Positions 29,959 to 61,444 of a stretch of DNA of 64,000 bases are shown one piece after another (position 1 is the stretch's first letter; every line of letters begins with the position of its first letter). The notes under the pieces are model-generated. The model ran no database searches and was not told where the DNA came from. It saw only the letters and a program-made list of their open reading frames with translations. A program made the position numbers and the translations under genes. This DNA is from Lepidodermella squamata (lineage: Eukaryota > Animalia > Gastrotricha), in the NCBI GenBank assembly GCA_047495785.1, contig JBLDXI010000009.1, positions 4,588,001-4,652,000 of the forward strand, read 5' to 3'.

Positions 29959-32406
29959 ATGGGGGCTTCGCAGCGCGGCGGTGTGAGAGGCGGCGAACAA
30001 TGTTGGCGCCTTGCTGGTCGCTTTGCTTCACTGGAAGACGCATCAATTTACGCCACGAAGCTGAACCCAGACGCCAAATGGACCACTGGTCAAAGCTATC
30101 GCACCGCTGACGGCGAGAAGCGATACAAAAACTGCTCTAAATGCGGTCGAGGCGAAAATAAGCAGTGTTTTTCACAAATTCATTACCTGCTACATGCCGA
30201 TTGCATGGACGTGTCAGTTTACGTCAACGACCGCCAACACACTCACACAAAGTAATTTTTTATGAATTTATTTGATATTTTAGAATTATTTTAGATTTTA
30301 GAATTACCCCCACTTGCGTATTTCCCACTTGCGTATCTAAGCTAAAACCAAACTTTAAACAAATTCAAACCTAACCCTAACCCTAACCCTAACCCTAACC
30401 CTAACCTTAACCCTAACCCCAACCCTAACCCTAAACCTAAACCTAAACCTGACCCTAACCCTAACCCTAAACCTAACCCTAAAAAAAGATACGCAAGTGG
30501 GAAATACGCAAGTGGGGTACACCCAGATTTTAATAGATATTTTTAAATTTTTTAAAAACATTAAAAAAAATTTATAATACCTAGTTTACAAAATTCCAAA
30601 ATATTTTTTAATTTTTTTTTAATTTTATTTATCAAGAAACAAAACCCGAGGTTTGCCGGAAGAATTCATCCAAAGGATTAGGGAGGCTTACTTGGAAGGT
30701 GGTTTGACGAAACCTGGGCAGGTCAAAAATTTTCTGACACACAAATTCGGCGCAGAACGAATGAAGACGATTAAAGACGAGAAAATCAAGTATGAATTAC
30801 GCAAAGTGAAAAATGGGAACAAAACGAACACTGCGCCATTCCAGTTATCTGACTTTTACGATTTTGCCGAAAAATACAGCGAAATCGACAAGAATGATCT
30901 AGATAAGCCATTCGTGATGAAACTCGAAGTGAAACCGACCGAAGGCAAGCGGAAGCAGGAGTTCCGGCTCGTTCTTTCCACGCCGCGCCTCATCAGCCAT
31001 CACAAGTTTGCTGGGCCTCTTCATATCGATGCTACCCACAAGTTGAACTGGAAGAATTTGCCTGTAATGCTCGCAGGGACATCTGATAAAGATAATCACT
31101 TTCATCCTACGGCGATCGCCTTGACATCCGGTGAGACTGAGGACGACTTCAAAGCGATTTTCAAGGCCATGAAATCCGGTTATGACCGTGTAATGAGTGA
31201 GTTGTTTGTTTATGTGTTCGCACACTCTTGACTCTCTTGACTCTTGTTTACTTAGGTACTCAAATGCCGACCCCTTCAGTTATCGTGCGCGATGGGGCGA
31301 CTGCTATTGCTAATGCGGCAGACGAAGAGTTCCCTGGTGTGAAGCAGGTCATGTGCTGGGCCCACGTGCTGCGCAACTGCGACAAGCGGTTCTGTTTGGC
31401 ACCAGCTGATCTTCGTGAGGAATTACGCGCTGACATCGATATTATCCAGCTTAGCCGCAGCACGGCTATGTTCGCTGCATCTTCGCAACTGTTCCTTGAC
31501 AAATGGGCTGAGTTGGCGCCGGATTTTGCCGAGTATTTCCGCGAGGAATGGCTCGATAATTCCGTGCGAAATACCTGGTTCGAAGGGTTTGCTGATGGCG
31601 ATCCTTCCACCAACAACGGAAATGAATCCTACAATGATTTGCTGAAGCGACAATTTACGCTCCGCGAGCGGCTGCCCATTGCTCAACTGCTGGCTTTATT
31701 TGTCGAGCGCGTTTTGCCTGCGTGGTCTAGAAACCGAGACATCGAAGACGTTAATTGTAAGACATTTTTCGTTGCGCCCTCAGTCACTGATGCTCTTTGG
31801 CTGGATGCGGTCCACTGGAGCGACCAGAAGATCAAGCAAGTCGAGTTCGAGCATCAGTCTTATTATGTTTTCAGATGGTCAAATGCGTCTGCGATCACCA
31901 AAACTGAAGCTAACACCTACCGACGACAAATGAAATCGTTGAAGTGGGCGGATTTCGACGATTTCAAAGTTTTCGTGCGAGAGCGTTGCCTTCTCACCAA
32001 AATCATGGCGCCCGCGTGCCCATGCGAAGATTTCGTTGCAACTGGCGATTGCCTTCATTCGCATTTTAAATGCTCGTGTTCGGACTATCAAAAGCGCCAC
32101 ATTTGCCATCACTCGCTTGGGATGAGTATCCGCCAGAACTTGGTGACGGTTCCGCCTAAATTCGAGGCCAATGAGCCGGTCGAAGGTCGTCGGGCTGGTG
32201 GCCGGATGAAGAGGGCGGTCAAAGCCTTGTTAGAGCAGCCGGCAGATCGTGTGGCTCGATCGATTTCCACTGAGGCCGGCCGGCCTGCTAAGCCTGCTAA
32301 GCGATCGGCTGTTAAGCGATCGGTCTCCACTACTACTACTGCTTCTACTACTGCTGCTACTAATGACAATTCGTTCACTGCCTCTAAAAAACAGCGGAAA
32401 AATTAA
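29959..32406 (+). CDS. MULE DDE transposase with SWIM zinc finger (spliced; 5' end uncertain)
   Basis: HIDATHK, VRDGATA, CWAH, STNNGNESYN and SWIM CSCSDYQKRHICHH. Introns at about 30252-30636 and about 31190-31256. Confidence 0.85.
30307..30517. mobile_element. MITE with an internal (CCCTAA)n telomere-like array
   Basis: TIRs ccccacttgcgtatttcccacttgcgtatc and gatacgcaagtgggaaatacgcaagtgggg, flanked by TA. The telomeric array spans about 30368-30482. Confidence 0.85.
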
Positions 32407-35858: not shown

Positions 35859-38800
35859 ATGGCCAAAGAAAAGCTACATATTTCTTTGAAAACGGATCAT
35901 TCCTCATTTATTGTGGAAATCAAATGTTATCGATTCCACGCGATCAAGCTGGTCTTTTTCCTGCTGTTAAGCATCGTCTCTCTCGGAGTTTTCCCACTAC
36001 TAGTCTATCTGCAAAATCGCCGTGGTTTCACATCACGATTCATTCTATGGACACATAACCTTTGTGAATTAGAAGATGCCTCAGCATATCTGGCAAGGAG
36101 GTTGGATGGAAAGGATGTTTATTCCTGCCAGCCTTTGCTCGTGAGTAATGATGGCTCACTGATTCGTCTCGGACCCGTGAATCGCACGTGGCTGAGTTTC
36201 AAGCAGAAACTTACTTTAAAAGATGAGTTCATCGACAAAAGCGAATCCGCCAACCCATTCATTGTGCACAATCAAAAGCAAAATGGCACACTGTGCCTAG
36301 CTTTCAGGGTAGGAGACCGTGGCATTTTCGTCTGGGATTGTCAAACTAAGCTTCTGCGTCGACTGGACCCCAAGCTGGCGAATAACGATAATCGTGATGC
36401 TCCCAAGATAGCTCAATTACTGGATGTCAAAGTTTACGAGCAAATCATCACAGCAAACGATACAACTCTCAAGATTGAGCTATTTAGGTGAGCTTAGCGT
36501 TACAGTTTCTAAAATCGTTAAAATCGTTAAAAATAGGAGAAACTTTTTAAAATCGGTTATTTTCTACATGTTGACAATTATTACTCTCGGATTGTTTGCC
36601 GCTGTGGTTTGTTATTGGAAACCCGCTTGGCAACTGCTTTTCACATCAGATCCGGTTGATTTCGCTAATTCTGACGCGGCAACCAGCGTGAAAATTACGG
36701 ATGAGAATTGTGATGTAGCCATTCGAGATCTATGGCTAGCGACGCGAGATGGAGTGCTACTGAATTGGAAATCATCTAGAATATCCCAAGGCTGCAAAAA
36801 TCTAACATGGTTTTTCTTCAGATATGAGCACGCGCCCATCGTTTTAGATTGGGAGACCAATAGATTCGTACCAGGGTCAGCTCTTTTACGAAACGTAAAT
36901 CCTGAGCATCCCTGGGCCCGAAGAATTTTATGCGGCTCAAATTTGACTCCAGTGCCGAAAACGCCCTTCCTGCTCATCGTTTGGCAAATCATTTTCACCC
37001 CGCTCTACATCTTCCAAATCGCCTGCGTCATACTTTGGTTTAACATAAACTATCAGATCTACACCGCATGTTTGGTCGTCATTTCATCACTCACTGTGCT
37101 ATGGTTGGCTTACATGACTTTTACTAACGAAAAAGCTGTAAGAATGGCTGTAACTGGAGGATCGAGCTCGCGAAATGACTCCGTTACCATCTTGAAATCA
37201 GGCTCGGGAGAGAAGTTGTCCATCAATGTTTCAGAGCTACTACCTGGAGACATTGTGAACGTCGAAGGAGTTTCTTCTATCCCAGCCGATTTGGCTTTGG
37301 TTACAGGGTCCTGTTTAGTTGATGAGTCGATGCTGTCCGGCGAGGTAACTCCGGTGACAAAACTCGCCTGCTCTCAAACTCTAACAATCAGGGATTTGGA
37401 TGTCCCTTCAGAAATAAATAAGTTGTATTCTGGAACCAAACTTCTACGCGTAAGTCCTTCGACCACGGCTATGGTTGTAGCAACCGGTTTTTCTACCACA
37501 AGAGGTCGTTTGGTTAGATCCGTCCTTCGCCCAACGAAATCTGATAAACGATTCTCTGTCGAAGCGGTGAAATTCATGGGCCTAATGGCTTTGATTTGTT
37601 TCATGGGCGTTATCTACAGCATGGTCATTCAAATCATTAGACATGAAGATACATTAGTCGCTGTTCTGATGGTGTTATCTCTGGCTTCGATCGTGATCCC
37701 ACCTCAAATTACAGTTGGTCTCACGATTTCTCAAGCAATTGCGCAAGTTCGCCTGAAGGCTAAAGGCATCTATTGCACTAGTCCGAAATCAATAACGCCA
37801 GCTGGGAGTATCGACGTTATTTGCTTCGACAAAACTGGGACTCTGACTGAGGAAACAGTGAAGCTACAGAGAATTTTGGCTGTTAGGTCGGACGAGTTAG
37901 AAACACCCAGCTTTTCAACGTCATTGAATGATGACGTCGAGCTTTGCGCAGCCTGTTGCAACACGATCACTGTTTTAGATTCAGGTGGGGACCCTGTTGG
38001 AGACCCTATCGATCTGGAACTTCTCAACAGCACATCATTCTCACTCTCGAAAACCGGGCTATTGATTTCTGGTTCCAAATCGGTAACACAGGTGAAGAAC
38101 TTTGGATTTTCTCCAGAGAGACGATCTTCCGCAGTGTTGATCCGAGTTAACAGCGAAAATCCTTTACGGCTACTGGTAAAAGGGGCTCCGGAACATGTTT
38201 TGCCAAGGTGCGATCAAGAAACTATACCGCGTGATATCGACGAGGTTATCAAGCGGGTTACCAGCCAAGGAATACGAGTCATCCTTTTGGCCTCACGACA
38301 TATCGAAGAATACAAAGAAACCACTGATTTGGATCATCTTGAAAAGGGAATAACCCTCCTTGGAGCCGCGATGTTCGAGAACAGTTTGAAGCCCCAAAGT
38401 GCACCTACGATAGCGAAACTAAATGCAGCCAAGTTAAAATGTGTGATTGTAACTGGGGATGATGTGAGAACAGCGACAGCAACTGCTAGAAAGTGTGGCC
38501 TGATATCTGGTGAGCCAATAACCACAATCAAAGCGGAAATTAAGTCTCCCGAAGAAGAAGAGGTGGCTGCCGAGGATCTTCTCGAATTTTGTAATGCAAA
38601 CCCAACTCATAAGTTTGCAATAACAGATGATGCATGGCGACAGATTCGAAAGTCATCAAATGCTAATATATTAATGAAAAGCCTCCTGGAACGCTGTGTA
38701 GTCTATGCTAGGTTCCGGCCTGAGCAGAAGGCTGAAGTTGTTACCGAGTTCAGAAATCGATTCGGATATTCCGTGGCAATGGTTGGAGATGGGACGAACG

Positions 38801-39663
38801 ATTGCTGCGCCTTGAAAGCTGCAGATGTTGGAATAGCCTTGACTGAGGCTGAAGCTTCAGTCGCAAGCTCATTCACCTGCAAGGACCGAAATATCTCCCC
38901 AGTCATCGACATTTTGAAAGAAGGTCGCTGTTCGTTGGTCTCAACGTTTGGCCTATTTGGTGTTTTGGTTTCTTATTCCTTCACTGAGTTCTGCTCCATG
39001 TGTATTGTTTACTGGGTCAAAGCGAATCTCTCTGAAGTTTCATTCATCTACATAGATCTGCTCTTACTCACCATTCTGTCATTCTTGTTCCCTTTCGTCC
39101 CAGCTTACCGGCACGGTCTTAGCGTTGAGAAACCTCCAAAGCGACTGATCTCAGCATACCAAATCCTGCCGATCATAGCTCATAACCTTATTAACGTTGC
39201 ATTTCAAGTTCTGGCATTCGTTTACGTTCAGAAACAGCCTTGGTTCCTACCCTACAACAGCCCTCAGGTTATATCGATGGAAATGTTTCAAATAATGTAA
39301 TGTTTTGGTTATTTTCAGACTTTGGATATGTTTCGGAAGTATCCCAGCTTCGAAGTCTATGCGCTTTATTCAGTCTCTGTTTTCCAATACATTTGGTCGG
39401 GTATTGTCTTCGCAGTTGGCCCGCCTTTCAGGAGCCCGTTTATCAAAAGCAAACTGCTTAGCTTGCACATGTTCATTATTCTATTCATCAACCATGCAAT
39501 CGTGATAATGTTGCCCGATGCGATAAAGAACCTATTTGGAACCTTCCCAGTGCCTTCGATTGAGTTTCGAATAATTCTGATTTTGCTTGCTTACATCAAC
39601 TTTGGGACTACTTTATTCGCTATTCGTTTCATAAGATTTATTGTAGACCGGATGTCGAAATAA
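35859..39663 (+). CDS. P5-type (ATP13A-like, P5B-related) P-type ATPase
   Basis: Exons 35859-36488, about 36537-39267 and 39319-39663. Motifs DESMLSGE, FDKTGTLT, KGAPE, TGDD, PEQK, GDGTND, EASVASSF and KEGRCSLV. Confidence 0.92.
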
Positions 39664-39694: not shown

Positions 39695-42600
39695 TTAGTC
39701 TGTTTTAGCAGAGTTTTCCGGTGTATCGTCCAAGCTGGCGTTATCTCGCAGGAACTGGGCGATTTCCCTGTGGCCTAAAGCGTCGGCTACTGCATCTATT
39801 GTTTGACCATCTTTCGTTTTGATCTTCGCAGCACTTGGATCTTTGAAGAAAAGATACTGAGTGAGTTCCGTATGACCGCCACATGCTGCCATCATCAAAA
39901 CATTGAGTTCTTGATCAGTATTATTGATTTTGACCTTATCATCACATTTTCCCCAAAGCAGTTCAACAACCTCCATGTGACCGTTACCAGCCGCCAGCAT
40001 TATCGCCGTCCCTTGAAGCTTCTCATCTCGAACATTGACTGAATCAGGTTGATTTTTCAGCCACCACTTAACCATTTCAACCTGACCGTTAGAAGCAGCC
40101 ATTGTAAATGCCTTGGCTCGCACCTCTATGGTAAATTTGTAATTTTTCAGCATAAACTCGACACAATCAATATGGCCTGAAAATGCGGCGAAGCACATCG
40201 GATTTGCGTCCATTTGCTTCTCGCGCATGTCGATCATTTCCGGGCAATTTTTGAACAGAAATTTACATATTTCGAGTCGGCCATCAAGAGCTGCTATCAT
40301 TAAGGGTGAATGACCGTCCATGCCGACAGATTTAACGTGATCAGGGGCCACTTCGAATATGAACTCGCATACAGCCAGTTCTCCATGCTTAGCTGCGTAG
40401 AAAAACGCGCTTGCCCCGCTTTTGTCCAGGGTTTTAATAGATTCAGGATCGAGGCTGTGCAAATACTTCACGACATCGATGTGGCCATTTTTCGCAGCAT
40501 AGATAATTGCGATATTTCCTTCATCGTCTTTCTTATTAAGGCTTTCTGGGGATTTTTCAGCAATTTTCTTCACGATTTCGAGGTAGCCTTTCCTGGCAGC
40601 GTTACGGAGGGCTGCGTCGTATTTGTAATTGGCGCCCTCCACGGCAAGTAATTTCTCAACTTCAGAGCCATTTCCCTGGAATGCTGCTAGGGCCAGCTCA
40701 CAAATATTAGATGCAGCCAGTAACTCTTGTTCCCATTGTAGCTCAGCCGACAAATTGTGCCATTTCAACAACAATGCGCCAAGTGTGATATTGTCTAAGG
40801 TTTGTCCGAATCCACCAAATTTAGCCAGAGCATCAACCAGAAAACAGGATTGAACTTTCCCCGGCACAGCGATTTGCTTCTCACGGATAACCTTCTCAAC
40901 AACTTCTGGACCTAATGTCTTGATTTTCTGAATAATTCTTTTAAGAAGCCTCAGGGAATGATTTGCTTTGATCACACTTGGACCCATTGCGAATAAGAGT
41001 GAAGCAGGATGAGCCGGTTTGTCCCATTTAAAGTGGTACAAGTACTGTAGAAATGGCATCCCATTAGTTTCAGCTAATGATTTCTTCATGCAGATCTCCG
41101 CCAACGACGCTGCGTCCAATTTACTAACAATGCGCTTCAAGAGCTGACGTCGCCTGAACTTGAGGGCATTCAGCAAGACAGATAAGCCTGAATTTGAGTT
41201 CTGATGCCCGCCTCCAATTTCAGCAGATCCCATCTCACCGGCGACGATTTTAATGCGGACCTGAAGTAAGGCTTCATCGTCTGAAAGATTCGCGCTCAGT
41301 CTCAAGTCTTTTCTAGCCTTAGCCAGGGCGGATTCATAAAGCATTTGGTGGACTAAAAACCGATCCTCCAAATCATCTTTGTACTTCTCAGCTATTTCCT
41401 TCTCTGCCTGGCTGGTTTCTTCGTCATCGGCAGCCTCGTTGATGAGTTTCTCGCTCAAAACTCGTTTAACACGTCGAACTAAAGACCGTTTTTCAAAGGC
41501 GCGGCAAACGCCTCTAAGACCACACCGGAAACCTTCGTCGAGATCAAAGCCCCACAAAACGCCGAGATCGAAAATTGAGACAGGCTCAGCGGGGTTGTAG
41601 AGCAAAAAGGCGTAGAACAGCATTCTCATACTTGCATCCATTTGGTCAAGGCTGAATGAGAATAGGTTAGAAACCGTTTTGAATGACCTATTTTGTGGCC
41701 TCAGATCGCTGATTCTGTACTGAGGTGACGTTAGGGTTTTGTACTCGGCTTTTGCCTCGAATTTATCTTCGCAGTTGTTGATTCTGGCCGCGATGAGACT
41801 AGCGATCAACGGCAAGCCACAGCAGAGAGACGCGAGTTTCATTAGCTGATCCTCAGCTAGAAATTTATTGAGCTTATACGTTGATTTCAGCATGTCTTTG
41901 ATGCCTTCGTCGGTCATCTCCTCGACTCGCTCTGTTTTCTGGACGATGCTGAAATTGTTTTCGAGGATGGTCTGGGCGTCTCGAGTGACCACGAAGCAAA
42001 TCACGCTGTCGTTCAGCTTCTCGAGAAAGGCCTGCAGAACTCGGTAGTTGAACATGTCGTCGAGTACAAAGGCAACTCGCATGTTTTTCCGCTTGTAATA
42101 CGTCGAGATACTCTGAACACTGCCGAATGATGCAGATTTATCACTGTCTGCCTCCATTTCTGAGGCAAGAGTAAGAATTTTGTCGACAAAGGCCTTCTCG
42201 TCAAAAGCCTCTCGCCAATCGAAACAGTTGATCCAGATAGCTCGTTGGAAGTCGCAGTCTCGAGCGAAGAATGCGTGGTTCTTTTCATCGGACAGAAGTC
42301 TTGCAACTAAAGTTGTCTTCCCGACCCCGCCGTCACCTTGAAGGACCAAGCAGCCGTCATCTGGCGATTCGGCGATCAGTTGCATTTGACTCAAAATTCG
42401 CTGCTCGTCTTCCAAACGCGCGAAATACTTAGATTTTGAGAAGAATGGTACTCCGGCTGTTTTGAAGCTGGACAATAGAAAAAACCAATTCAAGAACTTG
42501 AAACAGGGAACGAAACCTACTTAATGGTAGGCTCTGGCGGGCGATTTTCACGTTGATTGCTTGACCATGCGTTCGTGCTAGTATCTGTATTTCCAGCCGC

Positions 42601-43328
42601 AGGAGGATTTACTGTGATGTGGATTTGTTCGCAAATCTTCTTTGAAATATCTCCGAAATCGTCTCCATCGCAATAATCGAATCTTAGCTGAGATTTGAAA
42701 ATGAATAGAAGCCATCCATCAGGTCTGTATGACTTTTCAACTCTGATAGGGATGATTTCCTTATTCTTATTGGCGGCGTATTCGATTTCTCGCCTGCAGT
42801 TCGCGCTTTCAGCATAAGCTTTGCTGAAAAATACCAGCACTACATCAGCATCATCGATTCCCTGTTAGAAAAGATTTATATTTCAATTTGAAAAGTAGAT
42901 CGAAATCTTACCTTAGCCATGGACTCGAAAGCACAGGATGTGTTTGCGATTGAGCCGAAATCGACCCAAACATTAAGATCAGGCTGCTGCATTAAATAAC
43001 GAGCCATTTCATGCACTTCCTCCTTTCGAGTCTTCCAGCAATAGCTGATGAACAGATTAATCTTCTTCGCCGAGCTGTCAGCATTTGAGGTTTTAATTTG
43101 CGTTGGTGTTTGGTGAATGTTTTCAACTTTGCTTGCGAAACGTTTCATAATGCTATCTGTTCGAGGGGTGGAGCCATAGCCACCACCAGTGCTCCTTGTG
43201 CCTTTCGCGGATTCCTGACGCCTTTGAGCGATTCGAGCTGAAAACTTTCGGTAGTTACTGGGCAGGCCAGCGTCAAGCTCTTCTTCGTCTGTAACATCGT
43301 CTTCTCGGAAATCATTACTCGGAGGCAT
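39695..43328 (-). CDS. TIR - NB-ARC (STAND) - ankyrin-repeat receptor, copy A
   Basis: Exons 43328-42912, 42861-42521 and 42467-39695. TIR_2-like FISYCW..SANCRREIEYA, P-loop GDGGVGKTT, Walker B VAFVLDD, GLPL, MHD-equivalent VHQ and about 8 ankyrin repeats. Confidence 0.9.
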
Positions 43329-43745
43329 AACTTTTTCGAGAAGTATTGAACAGCTGCTAACGAAAGCGGAAAGCGGAGCAAACCTTTTTTGAGCGTGAAT
43401 ACAAAGCTTTTATTAACACGGTTCTGTTGCGCCTCTAGATCGATAGCCCACCGCTTGATTATTAATTTATCAGTACGACCAATAAATCATCAATATATAT
43501 CGATTAACGCAATGTGAGGATTGACATATTTTTCTCATTTTGAGCTTGGGCAACTTCTTTGTTATGTGGAAAAATGGATAGTATAATTAGTGATATATGA
43601 TAAATAGTGGTAAAAATAGGCATAATGTGATCGGGCAGAGCGTAGGAATTCACAAAAGTTGTAAGCAAGATGATGCTCTTTCGCGCTATGAATGATCTCG
43701 TTACTTTTTAAGCTACTCTGAAAGCTGTTCAACAGAATGCTAACA

Positions 43746-44827: not shown

Positions 44828-47800
44828 ATGTGTCTCGTGAACATGATATCTTTTATGCTTTTAACGGCAATTGTCTTGGCTAGCTATGCTGCAAAGCCCA
44901 AACTTCTATGGCCGGTCCAGGTTTCTACGCTGGATAGGTCGAACGCCAGCGCTTATGCTTTGACTCAGTATATCAACAACGTATCAACAATTCTGGCCGA
45001 CTATGAAATCGTTGTGTATCCATTGATCAACTACTATGAAAATTCTAGTAACATAGAAGCAAGGAAGCTGTTTGACATCGAACTGCCGGAGGGAACTTAC
45101 CTGGCACCCATTTTTGTGGGACCTGATGGAGATTGCGACACATCTGCTGGCACCTACCGTGGCATCAATATGGTTATGGTAAATTATTCTTATTCTCATA
45201 CTATTACCATAGTTCATAAGTCATAAAAGCCCATAAGTCATAAGACTAATTAGGATCTCAAAATACGAGGGGCTGACAAAGGTCTCGCATTCGATTATCA
45301 AAAGGGGCGCCGGTAGAACGAACAGCTGAAAACAAGCGATAAACAACATTCATTATTAAAATCATGCATGGCAGCGAAAGTTGGACGTTAACTTCTGAGG
45401 ATGCGAGGCGACTCGTAGGCTATATGCGTTATTTGCGTAAAATATGCGGCGTAACACTCAGGGACAGGATTCGCAATGAGTTCATTAGAAATATGTGTGG
45501 TTCAGAACAATTTATGTTCAAAATTGCTAGGCGGCAACTTCGCTGGTACGGGCACGTCGCTCGCATGGACCCCGTAAGGCTGGCGAGCCAGATGCGGTAC
45601 TGGCAGCCGCCGGATGATACTTGGAGTCATAGACAACTCTATACAGATCGGAAACTAGCGATCTTCCTATAGTAAATAAATTCACACCAAAACGTGAAAA
45701 AGTGGGCACGCGACCTTCATTTTTATTCACTCATCGCCTTATCCGGCCATTGTAATTTTTCCGATTTTTAATTATTTTCTAAAATTCCCAGAGAAAATCT
45801 TTCATTTCCGACAAATTTCAAACAAATTTTCTTGAATACTAGAAGCGCTCTTCTATCGAATGAGTCCCGTCTCATGAGACGGTTTTTTTCTAACTTTTTT
45901 AAAATTATCTCCAAGTTGGTCACTTTTACGAAAAATCGCCATTTAAAGAGTCTTTCAGGACGGTAATATTTTTCATTTTAAGCCGAAAAATTCCAGGAAA
46001 AATACTATGATCTTATTCGATTTTTGCTCTATCCAAAGATATAAAACTTCTCTATCCAAGAGCGAATCAGAATTTTTTGCACATTTCCCCATCCGCCGGT
46101 GTTTCCTCCGCGCGCGCGCTCCTATTGGCTGGGCCTTGTTGCGCAACAACTGAGATAATTACAGCCTTCGTGCGCGCGCGCGCACGGATAAGAGCAAAGA
46201 CAGCTGCGCCCTGCGCTGAGTCAGCGAAATGCTTTCAAGAAAATAAAAAAGCTTAAATTAAGGCAGATTTTGTTGTCGAAAAACTTGACAAAATATGGAT
46301 TATCATGTATTTTGTTCGTATTTACCGATCTATTGAATAGAAAATAATGCGCGCGCAAATTAGAAAATTCAAATTTTAACTAACAAATTGCGAAAGCGCG
46401 CACCGATGGCACGAACTATTTTCGGTGATTTTCATCAAAATATAGCTTGAGACTCCAACCATTTGATTATTTTCGCGCTACATCGAATTGATTAAAAAAT
46501 GTTTCTTGCCCTTGAAAGTTTATGCCTTTGAAAAGTTACCGCTCATTAAAGCCGCTTATAATATAAAGTGGATGTAAAATTCCTTAGAATGATCAAAACT
46601 CAAGCGCTTCTAAAAATGTAGAAAAATTGCGAATTCACGAAAGTGACACAATATCATGATGAACCATAGTGGTGCGATTTTATTTTGCTTGGAAATATTT
46701 TTGAGCGCCCTGTCCATTTTAAGGCATCATTATTTCTCGCATATCTTCTTGATTTGCAATTTTTTCAAACTTGATACTAATTGAAAAATGTACTCTCGAT
46801 GCGCGCGCTTCACATGATATACTGGACTTGTTCAATTCGGGCTAGCTGACTTGTGGTTTTCTTGTGATTTTGCAGCGCGCGCGTAGAAAGCTGCAATTAT
46901 TTGTTGCGCAATAAATGCGCGCGCCGTGCAATTACGCGTAAATTTAACCAACCAATAGGAGCGCGCGCGTGGAGGAAACACCGGCGGATGGGGAAATGTG
47001 CGAATTTTTTTAATTTTGCGAAATTTGCATTCGCTTGATAATACTTTGAGCGAGCTAAAAATAGCTACAAAAAACCTAATAGCTATTTTTAGATTTAGCA
47101 GTATCACACAAAATCCCAATATTACAAGTCAGAAAATTTCGCGAAATTCGAAAAAATTCTGATTCGCTCAAGTTTTATATCTTTGGATAGAGCAAAAATC
47201 GAATAAGATCATAGTATTTTTCCTGGAATTTTTCGGCTTAAAATGAAAAATATTACCGTCCTGAAAGACTCTTTAAATGGCGAGCAAACGCACAGTGCGT
47301 TCGCGAGCTCAACTTTATGGAAGTAAAACCCAATCACCCCCCTCGGCAAAAATCATACTTTCTACGCTGCGCATCTGTTGAATTTACACAGCACAATGAA
47401 ATTTGCGTGGACGTAGGTGTTCAAAGTTGTACCGGATTACGGTTAGGATTTGTTTTTGTGCAAAACTCAATTTAAAATTGGAAATGCTAGCTAACATTAT
47501 TTAATCGAAAAAAATATCACATTCTCTACTTTTTCCATCTTTTGTTCCTGAAATTTGCAATTAGACCACGTCGAGCTGCTCAGGACCTTACATTGAATCG
47601 AGGCGAAGCGCATTCTTCAACAACCTGTACACTACTCTGGGAACCGTAAGCACCTACAAATACGCGTTCTTGGAGGCTATCAGAAGTCTGGGTGGCTGGA
47701 AGCAAGTTGGCATAATCTATTCGTGGTGGCTTCGTGACGTTCCCATGATAGCCGCTGAGACTTTCAAACTCTTGACTGCGAACAACATTGAAGTCAGCGC

Positions 47801-49610
47801 ATCTGTTGTGTCATACTGGTTTGCTGAATTGGAGGACGCCGATCTTCAACCTCTGCAAAAGGTCAGAATCGTTTTAATTTTCCCATATGGCGCCTACGAA
47901 TGTCAGATCTTCCTTTGCAAAGCCTATCACCATGGCATGCGCCCACCCTTGTACCATTTTATCGCCTCAATTCCGGCATGCTTAACTTGGAACCTGGACC
48001 GAGACGTGTACATTTCGGCTTTTTGTACAAGGGAAATCATCGACATCCAACTATCAGCGTTGTTTGTCATCGGTATCCCGACCAAAAATTTCGAAACTCC
48101 TGGAATTTCAAGTCTGGGAATAATTCCAGCTGATTACGACAACATGGTGCGCACGAAGATGCAAGAAGTTGGGAAGATAATTAGTATCGATAGCGTTCGC
48201 CAGGCTGACTTTGACTGTCAGATGTTGGCATTGCTCGCTTTAAACCAAACGGAAGCCATCCTCAGACAAAACTACAATCTCTCCTTAACTGATTTCAAGA
48301 ATCCAGAATACCAGGCTCTGATATACAGTGTTGCGAATCGAACCACGGCAGAAATTGATGTAGTTGGATTTCGAAATTCCAGGATAAAACGAGACGTGAA
48401 TGGAGAAATGTATCAAGACCTAGCGATAATGCAAGCTTACAAGTTGGAACCTCGTCGCGTGGGTCATCTAGCGTACAACCATGAGAAACGGTCTTATGCA
48501 TATCAACTAGATGTCAAACCAATCTGGGTTACTACAACGGGACTTCCTCCAAAAGATCTTTCTAACGTTGAACTGAGGATTGGCTACTGCGGCAGAATAA
48601 TGAGTGGCACTGTCGCTTGTTTGGCGGTATCTATGACTATGATTCAAGTCCTTCTTCTTACGACAACAGCCCGAACAAAATCAGAAACGTTTTACAAAAA
48701 CTGGAACAAGTACTTCGTTTTTATTGCCTGTATAAGCCTGAACGTATCGGCGATCTTTCTTATCATTGGTCATGATTACGCTCCTGCTACGGAATGCAGA
48801 TGGAGAATAGTAATGATACTGATAAGCTTGAGCATGTTTCATAGCCTGATCTTCAGTCAACTTTTCGTCTACAGCAAGTTTGTCCGTGTGATAACTTATC
48901 GAGTGAATAACAGAGGTATACGTTACATCAACCATCTTTCCAGATGGAAGCGATCTAGTCATGTTCGACCGACTGTTCAATCTTACGAATCAACAGGTAT
49001 TGTTATCCAACGTCGCGTTTCCATCCTTAAAAGTGATAGATATCAAAACCAACTGCAAATGTCTCAGTCTATGAGCGTGGCTTTGGCTATCAATGTCATC
49101 GGCCTATTTCTCTGGATCATCAAAGAGCCTATGCAGCTTGTTGTATTCAAAAACCTGGTAGCTTTCGACAAGGCGGCTGATACATATTTCGAACTCGATG
49201 TTATGTCTTGCAGTTCTGCGCATCTTAATTACTGGCTAGGCGCTGTTCTCGCCTTCAACTTCGGGCTAATCTCGCTGGCAAATTTGTTCTCAATTGATCT
49301 CAGGCGGCGCATCATGCCTAATGAATTTGCGCTGAGTTGCAACCTAATTAGAGCAGCGGCTGTAAACGCGCTAACGCTGCTAGCTGCTGGGGTGATTGTG
49401 CTCGCTTTGGTCGCTTCGTCAAACAAGCCATGCGTAGTGAACGCAGTACTAGCTTTCATCGAGCTCGTCTACTCTGGCCTGATGAGTTTCGTTTTGTTGC
49501 TACCTCTAACTGTGAAGGTTGAAAAACTTGACGCTGTTGCTTGCGTGGGCAATCCTAGCTCTAACAGCCAGCCATCACAAAAACCAGGTGTTTCCCCGAT
49601 CTTAAATTGA
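44828..49610 (+). CDS. GABA-B-like class C GPCR, copy A
   Basis: Exon 1 is 44828-45178 (signal peptide, INNVSTILADY). Intron is 45179-47564. Exon 2 is 47565-49610 in frame (WKQVGII, VRIVLI, 7TM). Confidence 0.87.
45364..45630 (+). mobile_element. RTE-type LINE 3' fragment in the GPCR intron
   Basis: HGSESWTL..MRYLRKICGVTLRDRIRNE..QLRWYGHVARM is typical of the RTE ORF C-terminus. Confidence 0.8.
45936..47283. mobile_element. Foldback/long-TIR element in the GPCR intron
   Basis: Long inverted arms tcgccatttaaagagtctttcaggacgg... and ...ccgtcctgaaagactctttaaatggcga, plus a second inverted pair at about 46080-46130 and 46950-47000. Confidence 0.8.
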
Positions 49611-52600
49611 ACTCATGCTTTCAACATAAGACCACAAATTAGCAAATTTGTCCATGTCACTTCAAATTTCACAAACCTTTTATCGTTTATTATATCAATA
49701 AAAGAACTAAACACTACAGAAGGAGACATTATTTAGCTTAGGATCTTGTTTACGTTGCCTATGCATGTGTGATTACGCTCATTCAACTTCGTCATACTTT
49801 CCCTGCGCTCTGTCTATTAAAAATTAGCTGGCAAACCAGAGGCTCATAAGAGAGTTGTTGCGTTCTTCAGCAGTTTCGTATCAAATTTTTCTGGATGTTG
49901 CGCGAAGAACGTTTCGTGGTGTCATATTGTGATATCGATATGTCTGAGGGCTAGACGCTTGCCTGTAAGCGAGCACCCCCTTGCACAGCCAATTAACAGC
50001 GAAGTGAAAGTAAGAGGATACTGATTGATCAGAACGAAACACAGCTCATATTTTGACCCTCCGTAGCAGTGCAAGGCGATTTTCCTAGTTTCATGAGGAA
50101 CATTCGAAGAAATGAAAGTAACGAGGGAATGGGGAAAGCATAAAAGGTGAACAGAAATTTATTTGTGAATTTCATGGAAATTTGGAGCAGCCTTAAACAA
50201 CGTATAAAACTTCACATCCCCCAAACTTAAGCAGTCAACCGCCCGGTAAACCGACTTATCGCATTTCGCTCATTATTTTAACGCGAAAGCCTTGTATTTT
50301 TCAACTCTCAAGTGCTCGATTATGGCATGGCTAATGGCACAAACTAGCGGTGGCCAGGGATCAACTATCCGCATAGAAAACGCGGATCAATTTTACCGCC
50401 TGTCGACGCATAGCTTGAAACCTACAAATATCGTTAGCGTCGTTGAATAACTCGGATTTAGGCTTGTTTACATCCGTTTCAAGGTCACGGGTGACAAGTA
50501 AAGTGCGGCTTTTTTATCTTGAAAGAGGACAAAACAAAAGGTGCCTTTTTTACTTGTCACCTATCAAATCGAAATGGATGTAAACAAGCCTAAATCCGAG
50601 TTATTCAACGACGCTAACGATATCATCTCGGAGTGTGGCTTGCCGTCAAATGCTGTTACTAGCCGTCTCCAACCGTCACAAAGCCCCCTGGAGACCCGGC
50701 AGCAAGATCATCTAAACAATTGGAATGTATACGGGTAGCCGATATTTTTATTGCGGCTTTTATCGCGGCGGTGGCCGTGCGAATCAAGTGTCTACAAGGC
50801 GTTCTTGTCCTACGCTGCTGTGGGCATCAGCATGTCTGAAGAACGCGGCCTGTTGTTCGCAATATCAACTGTACCGCCACATGTACCGCTCTTGGAGAGC
50901 CTGTATGTCAGTCCGTCTTTCGCCTCAGCCGATGCCAAGCCGGCCCTTCAATCCGTCGTCCCCAAGGTTCAAGGTTCAATCCGAACATAATCCGAACTTT
51001 ACAGCCATCAAATCAGCCAGGCAAAACAACCGAAAAGTGACAGGAAGAATATCGAACCTTACGAACGCATTCTCGTTATCGTCAGAAAATGAACACCACC
51101 CCAAAAGAATGCTTCCCTGCTGTTATATACATTAATTTCTTCACATCATCACTGAATGTCCTAGGGCTTGAGCTATAAAAAAACGTCCGTCTTTCGACTC
51201 GCGGGATTCGTCATTCGTTTCGCAAGTTCAGCCAGACCTTTATCCGATCGGGTTCGCCGATCGAGATGAGTTGTCCACGAGTCGAAAAATCTAGCCCGAC
51301 TCTTCCCGTCAGTAAATATCTCCACACCAGGTCCGACCCGTAAAAGAAAGATTCCGCGAAATTTGTATTCATCCTTCCTTCACGTTGAACATCAACTTGA
51401 CTTCAACAAAATAATCAATTTTTGAGAAAAATTAGCATAAATGAGGATACAATATACAATTTTGCTAATTGAACAGCAACTTATCTTATCATTTTACTTA
51501 CTGTAAAATTTACTTAAAACAATGGAAAATAGTGGTAAAGAAATCCATAAGGACGTACCCGACACGATGAATCCGGCCCGTGGACATCTCTGGACCAATC
51601 TATCAGCCATTCTACGGCTGACTGACCCCTCCCTAGCTGCCGTGGCCGCGGCCGCTGTCTAACCAGCAGCCGGTCCGGGGCGACACAAGCCGGGTCAGCC
51701 CAATCTTACCTTGCGACCTATTTTGAAGGACAGATTAGTTCTTAATTGTTTACGATAGGCTTCAAATTGATTCAACAATAATTCCTATCGATTCTGTATA
51801 CATATAACACTCTAATAGGATTGAGCCATGAAGAAATTAAATTGATACTTGGAATGTTCAATAAGGACCTTGAGGAACTCGGCTCGAAAATGAGTACCAA
51901 TAACAGTAAAACCCAATATTTATTTATTTATTTATTTAAAGAGCCATAACGCCCAGAAGAGGACAGCTCAGACAAGTGATCAATAGAAAAGTAAAGACAA
52001 CAACAAAATTGAAAATCGGAATAGCATAAATAGTAGACTGATCGGGATCACTATCGAAATCAATGCAATGATCAACATAACATGAAAAATATGAAAATAT
52101 ATGAATATTCAACAATCAGAGCAGAGCGGCATTAATGTTGTAGTAGTGTAGATAAGCCGCTTGGCGACACGCCTTCGCTGACTCCGCTTCGTGAACGCTC
52201 GAAGGCATTTGATTCCACAAGTGCGGGCCACGGTACGACATGCTTAGTTGGCCTCGCTCGGATGTGTAGGTCGGTTTTAACATGGGTTCGAAATTACGGC
52301 AGCTGTAGCCGTGGCTGCGATCGTTCAGCTTAAACATCAACGTGAATTCATCCGGCGCCATCTTGTTCAGGCTCTTCCACATGAATGTACATAGGTGCAT
52401 CGCATGCTTCTGGCCGACTGTTAGCCACCCAAGTCGATGCCGCAGCGGGGCCGGATCCGCCAATGGATGAGCGCCGTATATGATTTTGATAGCTCGATCC
52501 TGCGACGATTGCAGTTTGTCGCGAGTCGATTTTGAGGCCTGTCCGAGGGTGAGGTCGCCATAATTCAGATGGCTGACGACGAGGCCATTTGTCATCATAA

Positions 52601-53114
52601 CAGCAGTTTTGCGATCGATTCCAGCGTTGACAGCTTGTTTGAGAGCAAACAGGCCTTTTCGGGCTTTGCCTTTGGCCATCTCGACGTGCTCATCGAATTG
52701 TAGCTTGTTGTCAATTTTGAAACCAAGGGTATCCATGATTTCTGACGGCTTTATCGCAACTCCTCCGATTGTGACCTTGAAATCGGGCGCTGTCGAGAGG
52801 TGTGGTTTGAGAAGCATGAATTGCGATTTTTTCCCATTTACTGCGAGGCTGTTCTGTTTTAGCCATGCGCATACCCTGTCAAGTTCCAGTTGCAGAACTG
52901 AGTGGAGTTCGTTGATGTTCTTCGATCCGTAAAAAATTGTAATGTCGTCGGCGTATTGTGCTATACCGCATCTCCTTAAAATCAAAGGCAGGTCGTTTAC
53001 ATAAATTGTAAACATGAGTGGCCCAAGGACCGATCCTTGTGGCACACCGCAATCAATTGACTCGAACGGGGATGCTTCGCCGTTGATTTTCGTGGTTTGG
53101 CGGCGATTGCTCAA

Positions 53115-56996: not shown

Positions 56997-57515
56997 GTAA
57001 ACACATATATGTCGTAGGGGAACGCGCGTTTTTTGCAATTTTTAGGGGAACGCGCTTTCACCTAGGGGAACAGCGTGTTCATCTGAAAATGCTCGTAGGT
57101 GATCACGCGTTTTAGAGGAACACGCGCGATTTTAGCCGAACGTTTTGAAACCTAAAACCGCAGAGGAGGAGAAAGATATTATTAGAAAAGAAGGGTTAAA
57201 GTGCGCCACTAAATGCCACCCGGGCATTGAATGCATCAACCGTTAGATCCGGAGTTCAACAATTTCACTAACTACTGATTGACAGTTTTCGGTTGATCAA
57301 TTTTGATTTGAATCGCGTAAAATGTAAATAAATGTTTAGGGTTGCGCATTCATCTAGCGGAAGGCATTTGTTATTTCAATTGCATTCTCAATTGCAATAT
57401 ACCGCGGAAAGCGCGCATTTCGGAATAAAAGCGATTTCCAGCGGAACGCGCGATCCTCTAGCGGAACGCGCTTTCATCTAATGCGCGTGTTCCCCTACGA
57501 CATATATGTGTTTAC
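56997..57515. mobile_element. MITE abutting the 3' end of NLR copy B
   Basis: TIRs gtaaacacatatatgtcgtaggggaac and gttcccctacgacatatatgtgtttac, with internal ggaacgcgc repeats. Confidence 0.85.
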
Positions 57516-60500
57516 ATTGCGTTATCTCGCAGAAATCGAGCGATTTCCTTGTGACCTAAAGATTCAGCAAGCGAATCTATCGTTCGACCATCGTTCGCCT
57601 TGGCCCTAGCACAAGTTGGATCTTTGAAGAAAATAAATTGAGTAAGTTCGGTGTGTCCACCTAATGCTGCCGTCATTAATGCGTTGCTTTCTTTGCCAGT
57701 GCTGGCGATTTCGACCTTATGGTCACACTTGCCCCACAGCAGGTCAACAACCTCCATTTGGCCGTTACCAGCTGCCTGAATTATCGCCGTAACTTCTAGT
57801 TCCTCATCCTTGACATTGACAATATCAGGCTGATGTTTTAGCCACCACTTCACCATTTCAACTTGGCCATTAGTCGCAGCCATTATGAATGCCCTAGCGC
57901 GTATCTCCCTGCTGAATTTGTAATTATCCAACATGAATTCGACAACATCGATATGGCCTGAAAATGCAGCGAAGCACATCGGATTTGCACCCGTTTGCAT
58001 CTCACGCTCATCTATCATTTCAGGGCAATTTCTGAACAGAAATTTACATATTTCAAGGCGGCCATCAAGGGCTGCTATCATTAAGGGCGATTCACCGTTC
58101 AAGTTGGCTTGTTTAACGAGATCGGGGGCAACTTGAAATATGAACTCGCAAACAGCTAGTTCGCCATGCTTAGCGGCGTAGAAAAGTGCGCTCGACCCAC
58201 GATAGTCCTTAGTTAGAATTATTCCCGGATCAATGATGTGCAAGTACTTTACGACTTCGATGTGGCCATTTTTCGCAGCGCAGATAATAGCGATTCTTCC
58301 TTCATCGTCCTTTTTCTTAATTCTTTCGGAGAATTTTTCGGCAATCATCTTCACGATTTCGAGATATCCTTTCCTAGCAGCGTAGCAAATTGCTGCGTCG
58401 TATTTGTAATTAGGATTACCATCGGCCAGTAATTTCTCAACTTCAGCCTCATTGCCATGGAAGGCCGATAAGGCGAGTTGGCAGGTGTTAGACTGCGCCA
58501 ATATTCCTTGCTCCCATTCCAATTCTATAGATAAATTTTGCCATTCTAGCAGCACATTGCCAAGTCTAAGCTCGTCTAAGGGTTGCACGATGTTACCAAA
58601 ATTAGCGAAGGCATCGACCAGAAAACAGGATTGAACTTTCCCTGGTACAGCGATTTGCTTATCACAGATAACCTTCTCAACAATTTCAGGACCTAACGCC
58701 TTGATTTTCTGAATAATTCTTTGAACAAGCCGCTGGGAATGATTTGCTTGGTTCACGACTTGCTGATAGTTCGACATCAATAAGGCAATTGGCTTGTCCC
58801 AAATAAAGTGGTACAAGTATTGTAGAAACGGCATCCCGTCAGTTTCAGCTAATGATTTCTTCGTGCAGATCTCTGCCAAGGTCGATGCGTCCAATTTATC
58901 TACAATGCGCCGCGAAAGCTGACGTCGCCTGTATTTGAGAGCGTTCAGCAAGACAGAGAGGCCTGAATTTGAGTTCTGATGCCCACCTTCGATTTCAGCA
59001 GACCCCATTTCACCGGCGACTATTTTAATGCGGACCTGAAGTAAGGCTTCATCGTCTGAAAGATTCGCGCTCAGTCTCAAGTCTTTTCTAGCCTTAGCCA
59101 GGGCGGATTCATAGAGCATTTGGTGGACTAAAAACCGATCTTCCAAATCATCTTTGTACTTCTCAGCTATTTCTTTCTCAACCTGGCTGGTTTCTTCGTC
59201 ATCGGCAGCTTCGTTGATGAGTTTCTCGCTCAAAACGCGCTTAACACGTCGAACTAAAGACCGCTTTTCAAAGGCACGGCAAACGCCTCGAAGACCACAC
59301 CGAAAACCTTCATCAAGATCAAAGCCCCACAAAACGCCGAGATCGAATATAGATACAGGCTCAGCCGGGTTGTAGAGCAAAAATGCGTAGAAAAGCATTC
59401 TCATACTTGCATCCATTTGGTCGAGGCTGAATGAGAATAGGTTAGAAACCGTTTTGAATGACCTATTTTGTGGCCTCAGATCGCTGATTCTGTACTGAGG
59501 TGACGTTAGGGTTTTATACTCGGCTTTTGCCTCGAATTTATCTTCGCAGTTGTTGATTCTAGCCGCGATCAGACTAGCGATCAACGGCAAGCCACAGCAG
59601 AGAGACGCGAGTTTCATTAGCTGATCTTCAGCTAGAAATTTGTTGAGCTTATACGTTGATTTCAGCATATCTTTGATGCCTTCATCAGTCATTTCCTCAA
59701 CTCGCTCTGTTTTCTGGACGATACTAAAATTGTTTTCGAGGATGGTCTGGGCGTCCCGAGTGACCACGAAGCAACTAACGCTGTCGTTCAGCTTCTCGAG
59801 AAAGGCCTGCAGAACTCGATAGTTGAACATATCATCGAGTACAAAGGCAACTCGCATATTTTTCCGCTTGTAATACGTCGCGATACTCTGAACACTGCCG
59901 AATGATGCAGATTTATCACTGTCTGCCTCCATTTCTGAGGCAAGAGAAAGAATTTTGTCAACAAAGGCCTTTTCATCGAAAGCCTCTCTCCAATCGAAAC
60001 AGTTGATCCAGATGGCTCGTTGGAAGTCGCAATCCCGAGCGAAGAATGGGTGGTTCTTTTCATCCGATAAAAGACGTGCGACTAAAGTTGTCTTCCCGAC
60101 CCCGCCGTCACCTTGAATGACCAAGCAGCCGTCATCTGGTGATTCGGAAATAAGTTGCATTTGACTCAAAATTCGCTGCTCGTCTTCCAATCGCGCGAAA
60201 TACTTAGATTTCGAGAAGAATGGTACTCCAGCTGTTTTAAAACTGAACACAAACTAATTCACGGCATTTAATGCATAGTCTTTGAACTTGCTTCACTACT
60301 GTGGGCTCAGGCGGGGGATTTTCACGTTGGCTGCCTGACCAGGAGCTCGTGCCGGAATCTTTTGTATTTCTAGGAGCCGGTGGATTCACTGTGATATGGA
60401 TTTGCTCGTATATCTTCTTCGACATATCTCCAAAATCATCTTTCTCGCAATAATCGAATCTTAGTTGAGATTTGAAAATGAAAAGAAGCCATCCATCTGG

Positions 60501-61103
60501 TCTGTATGACTTTTCAACTCTGATAGGGATGATTTCCTTATTTTTATTGGCGGCGTATTCGATTTCTCGCCTGCAGTTCGCGCTTTCAGCATAGGCTTTG
60601 CTGAAAAATACCAGCACAACATCGGCATCATCGATTCCCTGTAAGAGAAACGTTAAAATTGAGAAGTACCTATATAGAAATCCTACATTTGCCATGGACT
60701 CAAAAGCACAGGATGTGTTACCGATTGAGTCGAAATCTACCCAAACGTTGAGATCAGGCTGCTGCATTAAATAACGAGCCATTTCATGCACTTCCTCCTT
60801 TCGAGTCTTCCAGCAATAGCTGATGAACAGATTAATCTTCTTCGAAGAATTATCCACTGTTGAAGTTTTAGTATGAGCTGGTGTTTGCTGAATGTTCTCA
60901 ACTTTGCTAGCGAACCGTTTCATGATGCCATCTGTTCGAGGGGTGGAGCCATTGCCGCCGCCAGTGCTTCTTGTGCCTTTCGCGGATTCCTGGCGCCTTT
61001 GAGCTATTCGAGCTGAGAATTTACGGTAGTTACTGGTCAGACCAGCGTCAAGCTCTTCCTCGTCTGTAACATCGTTTTCTCGGAAATCATTACTCGGAGG
61101 CAT
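57512..61103 (-). CDS. TIR - NB-ARC - ankyrin-repeat receptor, copy B
   Basis: Exons 61103-60687, 60638-60292 and 60242-57512; the second intron is GC-AG. Same motifs as copy A. Confidence 0.9.
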
Positions 61104-61444
61104 AACTTTTACGAGCAGTATTAAATAGCTGCTCATGCAAGCGGAGCAAACCGTAATATTTTGCCTCTAAATCGATAGCTCACGGCTAGTTAATAATTCA
61201 TTAGTAGCATCAATAAAATATTCAATAAATCGATTCATGCACTATAATAATAATAATAATAATTTCTTTTTCAAAGCGAATTTTGAGGACTAGAAGGGCT
61301 TGTCACTTACTTTAACCCTAGGTATTAGCGTACGTGAGTGAGATGAACATTTCCGCTAGACTGGTTTCGTCTGGTTCAGTCTAGCTGGCATACTCCCAAC
61401 CTCCTAATTTTCAATTTTTAACGCTATGGAATAATAGTAAAACC

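Follow-up and report, generated by a model that had tools for sequence, protein, structure and literature searches.

Enzymatic TIR domains carried on STAND switches (signal transduction ATPases with numerous domains) play a central part in the immunity of plants and bacteria. Among animals, SARM1 is to our knowledge the sole well-studied TIR NADase, and it is not a receptor of the NLR type (nucleotide-binding domain, leucine-rich repeat). Apaf-1 is an animal protein with a switch of the NB-ARC class, and its WD40 propellers bind cytochrome c. Other arrangements occur in animals: amphioxus has TIR-NB-ARC-WD40 hybrid genes (Zhang et al., 2008, PMC2575513), and the 39 NB-ARC genes of placozoans carry WD40 or TPR (PMC6321704). 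The present analysis concerns two genes, A and B, in a stretch of 64,000 nucleotides from the gastrotrich Lepidodermella squamata (GenBank assembly GCA_047495785.1, contig JBLDXI010000009.1, positions 4,588,001 to 4,652,000; hereafter the window), whose predicted proteins join a TIR domain, an NB-ARC switch closest to that of Apaf-1 and a C-terminal array of ankyrin repeats (ANK). The genome paper of this species mentions neither NB-ARC nor ankyrin nor immunity (PMC11660948). A literature search found no animal protein of TIR-NB-ARC-ANK architecture, and the full-text matches listed for TIR-NB-ARC were all plant papers.

Architecture and switch of gene A

Gene A lies on the minus strand and, read from the DNA and spliced, runs from start to stop codon at 43328..39695 as one gene of three exons. 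In a six-frame list the locus appears as three successive minus-strand open reading frames (ORFs; 43328..42876, 42840..42517 and 42493..39695). The outer coordinates given in an earlier note on this stretch, made from the letters alone, are the stop and start of gene A, whose coding sequence is spread over these exons and does not form a single ORF. The spliced sequence comprises 3531 nt, that is 1176 codons plus the stop, with no internal stops. Reading through intron 1 leads to an in-frame stop, and exon 1 is 90% identical to exon 1 of the paralogue, gene B, whereas the intron that follows it is 62% identical.

The protein opens with a low-complexity N-terminus, continues with a TIR domain interrupted by intron 1, a linker, the NB-ARC module and a helical region, and ends in the ankyrin repeats (Table 1). 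Exon 2 alone matches Pfam TIR_2 at 33 bits (cut-off 28), NB-ARC scores 48.7 bits (cut-off 23.5) and Ank_2 163.8 bits, so all three matches proposed in the earlier note were obtained and the TIR-NB-ARC-ANK architecture is upheld. Its reading of the motifs also stands, each named element being present in the spliced translation, with SANCRREIEYA at residues 158-168. Pfam gives no match for CARD, death-fold, WD40 or LRR (leucine-rich repeat) in gene A; TIR_2 and Ank occupy the places of CARD and WD40. Walker A, Walker B, a sensor-1-like VVTRD, GLPL and the His of the winged-helix domain (WHD) are all found, the set that marks an NB-ARC/AP-ATPase STAND protein, and the G, K and D of the NB-ARC motifs are nearly invariant in the family alignment. 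All ten repeats carry the AAxxG anchor of tandem 33-residue ankyrin repeats. In an AlphaFold model of the exon-3 protein (mean pLDDT 77), residues 583-913 align with the arrays of Espin1 and ankyrin-1 (VIA-align Z 28-30 over ~318 residues). The same model has helices at residues 396-585, after the WHD, and the corresponding region is probably HD2-like.

The affinity of the switch was resolved with a family profile of the NBD-HD1-WHD alignment (A3; nucleotide-binding domain, helical domain 1, WHD) searched against all PDB sequences. The best match is human Apaf-1 (E 1.3e-21, profile 6-337 to residues 118-439), as against 8e-12 to 3e-11 for plant NRC2 and NRC1, 1.7e-9 for CED-4, and 5e-4 and 3e-3 for the plant TNLs (TIR-NB-ARC-LRR receptors) ROQ1 and RPP1. 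Structure comparison points the same way: in a Foldseek search with the exon-3 model, Apaf-1 and CED-4 are the first non-ankyrin matches, Apaf-1 over ~490 aligned columns. The idea in the earlier note that the receptor is unlike Apaf-1 is therefore not borne out, since Apaf-1 is its closest relative among solved structures. As judged from the alignments, the switch of genes A and B is of the Apaf-1 type, TIR having apparently replaced CARD and ankyrin repeats WD40. The family would nonetheless be classed as derived and paralogous, because the CARD plus WD40 that define an Apaf-1 orthologue are missing. Since the NB-ARC fits plant TNLs weakly and Apaf-1 far better, the TNL-like layout probably arose independently. 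Family profiles alone worked for these comparisons. Single-sequence searches of solved structures with the TIR exon and the NB-ARC returned nothing useful; word-indexed protein searches gave one ankyrin protein for exon 3 and only weak plant NLRs for the NB-ARC profile; a language-model atlas returned generic NB-ARC clusters (bacteria, fungi, nematodes) with no alignment and was not used as evidence.

The WHD ends in an altered MHD motif. At the end of the profile alignment the family 'lvH' falls on 'yLHD' of Apaf-1, His on His, and in the exon-3 model the His of VHQ is flanked by a strand (369-371) and a helix (374-387), the expected place in a WHD. VHQ thus occupies the MHD position, as had been proposed from the letters. 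The further suggestion that it hints at auto-activation fails, because the third residue varies throughout the family: the triplets read VHQ, LHE, VHP, VQK, VHE, INR, IHQ, VEK, IHQ, VNT, VNA and MHG, so that a conserved Asp is never found in third place and the His is sometimes lost too. The substitution is a trait of the family and does not correspond to the MHD mutations that auto-activate plant NLRs.

The whole TIR domain was scored and modelled on gene B, read through its in-frame 48-nt intron, which adds 16 spurious residues. In this form it matches TIR_2 at 60.7 bits (E 2.5e-16; cut-off 28), which together with the score of gene A exon 2 confirms the TIR_2-like domain first noticed from the letters, and ThsB_TIR at 24.2 bits (cut-off 21.2), while PF01582, the family of the Toll-like receptor (TLR) type, stays below its cut-off (17.6 bits). 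The corresponding AlphaFold model has a core pLDDT of 76-90, with low values confined to the linker and the spurious insert, and shows the beta-alpha pattern of a TIR domain, a flavodoxin-like fold. Its Foldseek matches (E 1e-5 to 2e-4) comprise the TIR of RPS4, SPARTA TIR-APAZ, EcThsB, nucleoside 2-deoxyribosyltransferases, MyD88 and SARM1, with the RPS4 TIR, the SPARTA TIR and ThsB at the top. Weak alignments of a small family TIR profile, with Cat1 at E 0.0045 and with RPS4 at E 0.017, both pair the family Glu (Glu164 in gene A) with the Glu of WCxxEL, a motif that reads 'WCVRELE' in RPS4 and 'WCWDELE' in Cat1. The equivalent residue is kept in six of seven family TIRs at 20-30% identity; the remaining one, P0010, has Gln.

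Divergence between genes A and B

Gene B was located by tblastn of the spliced gene A protein against the window and lies 14 kb from gene A on the same strand. Its first intron measures 48 nt (GT-AG) and its second 49 nt (GC-AG), both positioned as in gene A, and its NB-ARC scores 51.0 bits in Pfam. Identity between the two genes is 89-94% in the exons, as against 57-62% in the introns and 44-72% in the flanks. The apparent GC-AG site of gene B intron 2 (60243-60291, minus strand) reads AA|GCAAGT...TTCAG, where the gene A counterpart is GT-AG; no alternative GT preserves the open frame.

Selection was gauged from Nei-Gojobori estimates of nonsynonymous (dN) and synonymous (dS) divergence in this two-gene comparison. 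In the NB-ARC-WHD (residues 263-640) dS is 0.28 and dN 0.009 (dN/dS 0.03), and in the TIR dS is 0.27 and dN 0.023 (dN/dS 0.09): both domains are under strong purifying selection. The helical region holds the maximum of the gene, with dN 0.21 and dN/dS 0.28, rising to 0.49 in sliding windows, and the ankyrin part has dS 0.79, dN 0.16 and dN/dS 0.20. Protein-level change is thus ~20 times faster in the C-terminal third than in the near-frozen switch, and from the low ratios between the copies both genes have been kept by selection. Synonymous divergence is itself uneven, ~0.27-0.28 in the 5' two-thirds (TIR and NB-ARC) and ~0.79 in the ankyrin part. Each of three processes could account for some of this: partial gene conversion confined to exons, exchange of the sensor module, and constraint that acts on synonymous sites. 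Recent conversion of the whole gene was rejected as the full cause of the near-identical NB-ARC, given a dS of 0.28 there and introns ~60% identical.

The acidic insert noticed ahead of VHQ is present and is coding sequence, since an A/V exchange at residue 607 is the sole difference between the copies and dN is near zero (0.007, against dS 0.33). That it might be an unspliced in-frame intron was ruled out on the same near-zero dN, the real introns being just 57-62% identical.

Positions 2, 3, 5, 13 and 14 of the ankyrin consensus form the canonical binding surface and are the ones randomised in designed ankyrin binders. Over the ten repeats, differences between A and B are enriched at these positions (22/50) relative to the rest of consensus positions 1-27 (42/216; Fisher p 7e-4), and omega is 0.50 at the surface positions against 0.09 in the helix cores. 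The pattern fits a diversifying recognition surface, and the pairing of a conserved switch with a variable sensor is, at the level of sequence, typical of immune receptors.

Table 1. Coordinates of genes A and B in the window; residues refer to the spliced gene A protein
Feature	Position (strand)	Residues	Remarks
Gene A exon 1	42912..43328 (-)	1-139	Contains the start codon, the disordered 88-aa N-terminus and the first half of TIR
Gene A intron 1	42862..42911 (-)		50 nt, GT-AG, phase 0, within the TIR domain
Gene A exon 2	42521..42861 (-)	140-253	Second half of TIR and linker
Gene A intron 2	42468..42520 (-)		53 nt, GT-AG, phase 2; 57% identity to paralogue intron
Gene A exon 3	39695..42467 (-)		NB-ARC, helical region, ankyrin repeats, stop codon
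TIR domain		~89-215	After the 88-aa N-terminus; followed by the linker
Glu164 codon (GAA) in NCRREIEYA	42787..42789 (-)	164	Catalytic-position Glu of enzymatic TIRs
NBD-HD1-WHD (NB-ARC) module	41345..42451 (-)		Pfam NB-ARC and profile alignment to Apaf-1
P-loop GDGGVGKTT	42311-42337 (-)	297-305	
Walker B VAFVLDD	42056-42076 (-)	384-390	
GLPL	41807-41818 (-)	470-473	CGLPL in translation
Acidic wing insert	41360-41443 (-)	~595-622	28 aa, directly before VHQ
VHQ	41345-41353 (-)	625-627	At the MHD position
Helical region	40721..41281 (-)	~650-835	Between WHD and repeats, putatively HD2-like
Ten ankyrin repeats	39728..40720 (-)	~836-1166	Putative sensor; Pfam Ank families
Gene B	57512..61103 (-)		Exons 61103..60687, 60638..60292, 60242..57512; 1164 aa, intact

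Relatives and genomic setting

An exhaustive phmmer search of 1.84 billion cluster representatives, with the 600 residues encoded first in exon 3 as the query, gave just 21 matches at E <=1e-3, the best 33% identical and nearly all of them unnamed proteins from ENA metagenomes. Among these relatives the architecture recurs in whole or in part: P0010 is TIR_2-NB-ARC-ANK, P0007 is TIR_2-NB-ARC, and P0004, P0006, P0012 and P0015 are NB-ARC-ANK. The matches outside the family are solely Apaf-1-like, namely P0021 from the jellyfish Sanderia malayensis, with NB-ARC, APAF-1 helical domain and WD40, and P0019, with NB-ARC and an Apaf-1-like WHD. The three-part architecture was found on eukaryotic metagenome contigs (L001-L003), one of which, L001, also encodes tetraspanin, Fringe, anoctamin, septin and Arp2/3 genes. 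On L002 and L003 an upstream exon of its own encodes the first half of the TIR, and the L003 homologue, only ~30% identical, has an intron at the exact position and phase of gene A intron 1. This shared intron indicates that the gene structure is old and eukaryotic, which argues against a recent horizontal transfer. In the L003 gene (4459-7713) a 76-nt intron separates the first TIR exon from a TIR-NB-ARC exon (P0008), after which comes an ankyrin exon (P0009); a gene caller for prokaryotes had split the gene into three separate proteins.

The window is animal genome with very short introns. Its further genes comprise two class C G protein-coupled receptors (GPCRs), a K2P channel, an IDO-like protein and a P5B ATPase, together with fragments of retroelements and of MULE transposons. 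The class C GPCR, K2P and P5B ATPase neighbours, with the spliceosomal introns, bear out the animal host assumed in the earlier note. The P5B-type cation ATPase (36424-39663, plus strand) has a first exon of 958 aa and short further exons to ~39663; it stands tail to tail with gene A and finishes ~31 nt from the stop codon of the latter, so the 3' untranslated regions must overlap or be extremely short. Among named proteins it has no relative above 33% identity, from which the lineage appears to be poorly sampled. The two class C GPCR-like genes are large, single-exon and facing (17562-20081, plus strand; 21038-23509, minus strand), with ANF_receptor in both and 7tm_3 on the first. Between genes A and B lie a 646-aa ORF with no Pfam match (47670-49610, plus strand) and one retroelement. 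Fragments of retrotransposon reverse transcriptase, together with an ORF for a MULE/Mutator transposase, are found at 52116-55995 (minus strand), 28868-29575 (plus strand) and 31228-32406 (plus strand). Between 32000 and 36000 the G+C content is raised (0.46-0.50) and GC skew strongly negative (to -0.20), unlike the remaining window. A search with Rfam revealed no RNA family within the window.

Upstream of both genes stands a shared block, GCTATCGAT(C/T)TAGAGGC, at 43400-43450 for gene A (~100 nt before the ATG) and 61170-61215 for gene B (~60 nt), on the minus strand; the surrounding upstream sequence is poorly alignable, and the block may be a shared promoter element. Also common to both genes is AGCAG|CT, located 25 nt ahead of the ATG, a possible acceptor site for trans-splicing.

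Two sequencing runs, X1 and X2, were compared as assembled contigs, which are unable to show splicing and in which no splice joints appeared. The contigs of X2 (2015, guessed to be RNA) are identical to the window and cover every genic bin, with zero depth in two bins (265 nt) upstream of the gene A start codon; the X1 contigs (DNA) leave nothing uncovered and show 1-2% divergence. As a sign of gene A expression, the X2 pattern is suggestive at most. Over the NB-ARC core (41144-41691) the summed contig depth, at a similarity of at least 90%, is 4-6 times that of the flanks in both runs that contain this DNA, a hint that the genome may have several further, nearly identical copies of the NB-ARC at other places.

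Explanations and comparison with described systems

The explanation that we favour, with moderate confidence, is that genes A and B encode cytosolic, ligand-gated STAND receptors of a lineage-specific animal family, one that derives from NB-ARC proteins of the Apaf-1 type and signals through its TIR head. The interpretation given in the earlier note is thereby partly supported. Ligand gating, oligomerisation, a role in immunity or cell death and NADase chemistry are proposed by extrapolation from the behaviour of Apaf-1 and of plant and bacterial NLR-type STAND proteins. On this model the ankyrin array and the helical linker would keep the ADP-bound NB-ARC closed; a ligand, probably a protein, would bind the concave ankyrin surface and free the NB-ARC, and nucleotide exchange would lead to oligomerisation. 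The clustered N-terminal TIRs would then signal, likelier through Glu164, by NAD+ cleavage or nucleotide signals, or alternatively by nucleating assemblies of TIR adaptors through TIR-TIR contacts. A stronger version, in which this spiralian micro-invertebrate independently built a plant-TNL-like immune system from an Apaf-1-type switch as a multigene family with pathogen-recognising ankyrin 'fingers' and NAD+-consuming TIRs, is put forward tentatively and with some doubt.

Several observations weigh against the favoured explanation. The TIR model includes 16 intron-encoded residues, and its PDB matches are modest (E ~1e-5). The Trp that precedes the Cys of WCxxE in RPS4 and Cat1, although perhaps not indispensable, is Asn in genes A and B, and the position is L, R, H, N or E in homologues, that is, not conserved in the family. 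Non-enzymatic TLR TIRs also have Glu at the position of Glu164, so this residue is not diagnostic. Omega at the ankyrin surface stays below 1, so that positive selection is not proven there and relaxed constraint on loops accounts for the pattern equally well. Finally, run searches found no sequencing run recorded as RNA that contains gene A. The catalytic Glu claimed in the earlier note is thus present at the catalytic position, in alignment with that of RPS4 and Cat1, but it is necessary rather than sufficient. With the Trp absent and the Glu shared by TLR TIRs, NAD+-consuming chemistry is plausible and no easy call: from the alignments, the balance stands about even.

The principal rival keeps the STAND switch but makes the TIR a non-enzymatic scaffold that recruits MyD88-like or SARM-like TIR adaptors homotypically, in the manner of TLRs. 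Besides the missing Trp of the WC motif, the Gln that P0010 has for Glu and the MyD88 TIR assemblies among the structural matches agree with it, and the amphioxus TIR-NB-ARC-WD40 proteins have been read in this way (PMC2575513). A scaffold would hardly explain why the Glu persists in six of seven highly diverged family TIRs, why the best matches in sequence and fold are the enzymatic TIRs RPS4, Cat1, SPARTA and ThsB, or why ThsB_TIR passes its Pfam cut-off and the TLR-type PF01582 does not; we regard it as unlikely. Rather improbable is a diversified apoptosome paralogue for developmental or stress-induced cell death, with an ankyrin array that binds an endogenous danger signal instead of a pathogen. 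The closeness of the NB-ARC to Apaf-1 and the many Apaf-1 paralogues of placozoans (PMC6321704) would suit this proposal, yet Pfam detects no CARD or death-fold for caspase recruitment, and tandem copies with a diverging sensor and a near-frozen switch are expected of receptors that track variable ligands.

That the locus is no functional host gene at all, being a decaying duplicate, a cross-frame illusion or bacterial, fungal or contaminant DNA, is largely refuted and very improbable. It would draw on the missing RNA record and on closest relatives known from metagenomes only. It is opposed by two intact ORFs that exceed 1160 aa and show a dN/dS of 0.03-0.2, by short canonical spliceosomal introns, one at a position common to a ~30%-identical homologue, by the animal genes that flank gene A on the same contig, by homologues on eukaryotic contigs with tetraspanin, Fringe, anoctamin and septin, and by an NB-ARC nearest to metazoan Apaf-1. 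Should the stronger version with NAD+-consuming TIRs hold, genes A and B would represent the first animal NLR-type receptor family that uses enzymatic TIR signalling. Their apparent Apaf-1 origin, key TIR Glu and fast-changing sensor surface open a direct way to test whether domain shuffling gave rise to TIR-enzyme receptors in animals too. More generally, immune-receptor-like repertoires in poorly sampled phyla escape standard annotation, because tiny introns split the genes and the databases hold almost no relatives.

The TIR of genes A and B shares the TIR_2-type fold and the alpha-C Glu with SARM1, ThsB, SPARTA TIR-APAZ and Cat1. The regulatory modules of these proteins (ARM-SAM, Argonaute, CRISPR CARF) differ from that of gene A, whose putatively enzymatic TIR lacks the Trp at position -4. 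As regards the sensor, ankyrin is the commonest repeat of fungal NLRs (Dyrka et al., 2014, PMC4986451), and NACHT/NB-ARC proteins with ankyrin repeats are described in corals (Hamada et al., 2013, as summarised in PMC4083563). The view in the earlier note that ankyrin sensors on STAND proteins are best known in fungi and bacteria has to be widened to animals in the light of these coral proteins. In both groups, as in gene A, a STAND NTPase is followed by an ankyrin sensor that forms a superstructure. The N-terminal domains are different: the coral summary lists CARD, DED, Death and glycosyl transferase, the fungal account HET, HeLo, PNP_UDP and others, and gene A has TIR_2. Neither account describes a TIR_2 on an NB-ARC-ANK protein (PMC4986451, PMC4083563). 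The amphioxus genes, set beside gene A by description, likewise have a TIR before an Apaf-1-like NB-ARC; they keep WD40 and belong to a chordate, whereas gene A has ankyrin repeats and belongs to a gastrotrich. It appears that only the combination of TIR, NB-ARC and ANK has not been described before.

Plant TNLs such as RPP1, ROQ1 and RPS4 have the same order as gene A, a TIR followed by NB-ARC and a C-terminal repeat sensor, and the RPS4 TIR is among the best matches of the gene A/B TIR in sequence and fold, with the Glu aligned. Their sensor, however, consists of LRR and C-JID, whereas gene A has an ankyrin sensor and lacks the Trp of WCxxE. Apaf-1, an apoptosome ATPase like Dark and CED-4, resembles the gene A family in the NBD-HD1-WHD, where the likeness extends to the His of LHD and to a 'GVP' linker motif ahead of the NBD, and just as HD2 follows the WHD in Apaf-1, a helical region does so in gene A. 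Where Apaf-1 has CARD and WD40 propellers, the gene A family has TIR and ten ankyrin repeats; the Asp of LHD is replaced in gene A, and an acidic insert of 28 aa has entered the WHD wing. Unlike Apaf-1, the gene A family is multi-copy, with a sensor that diverges between the copies.

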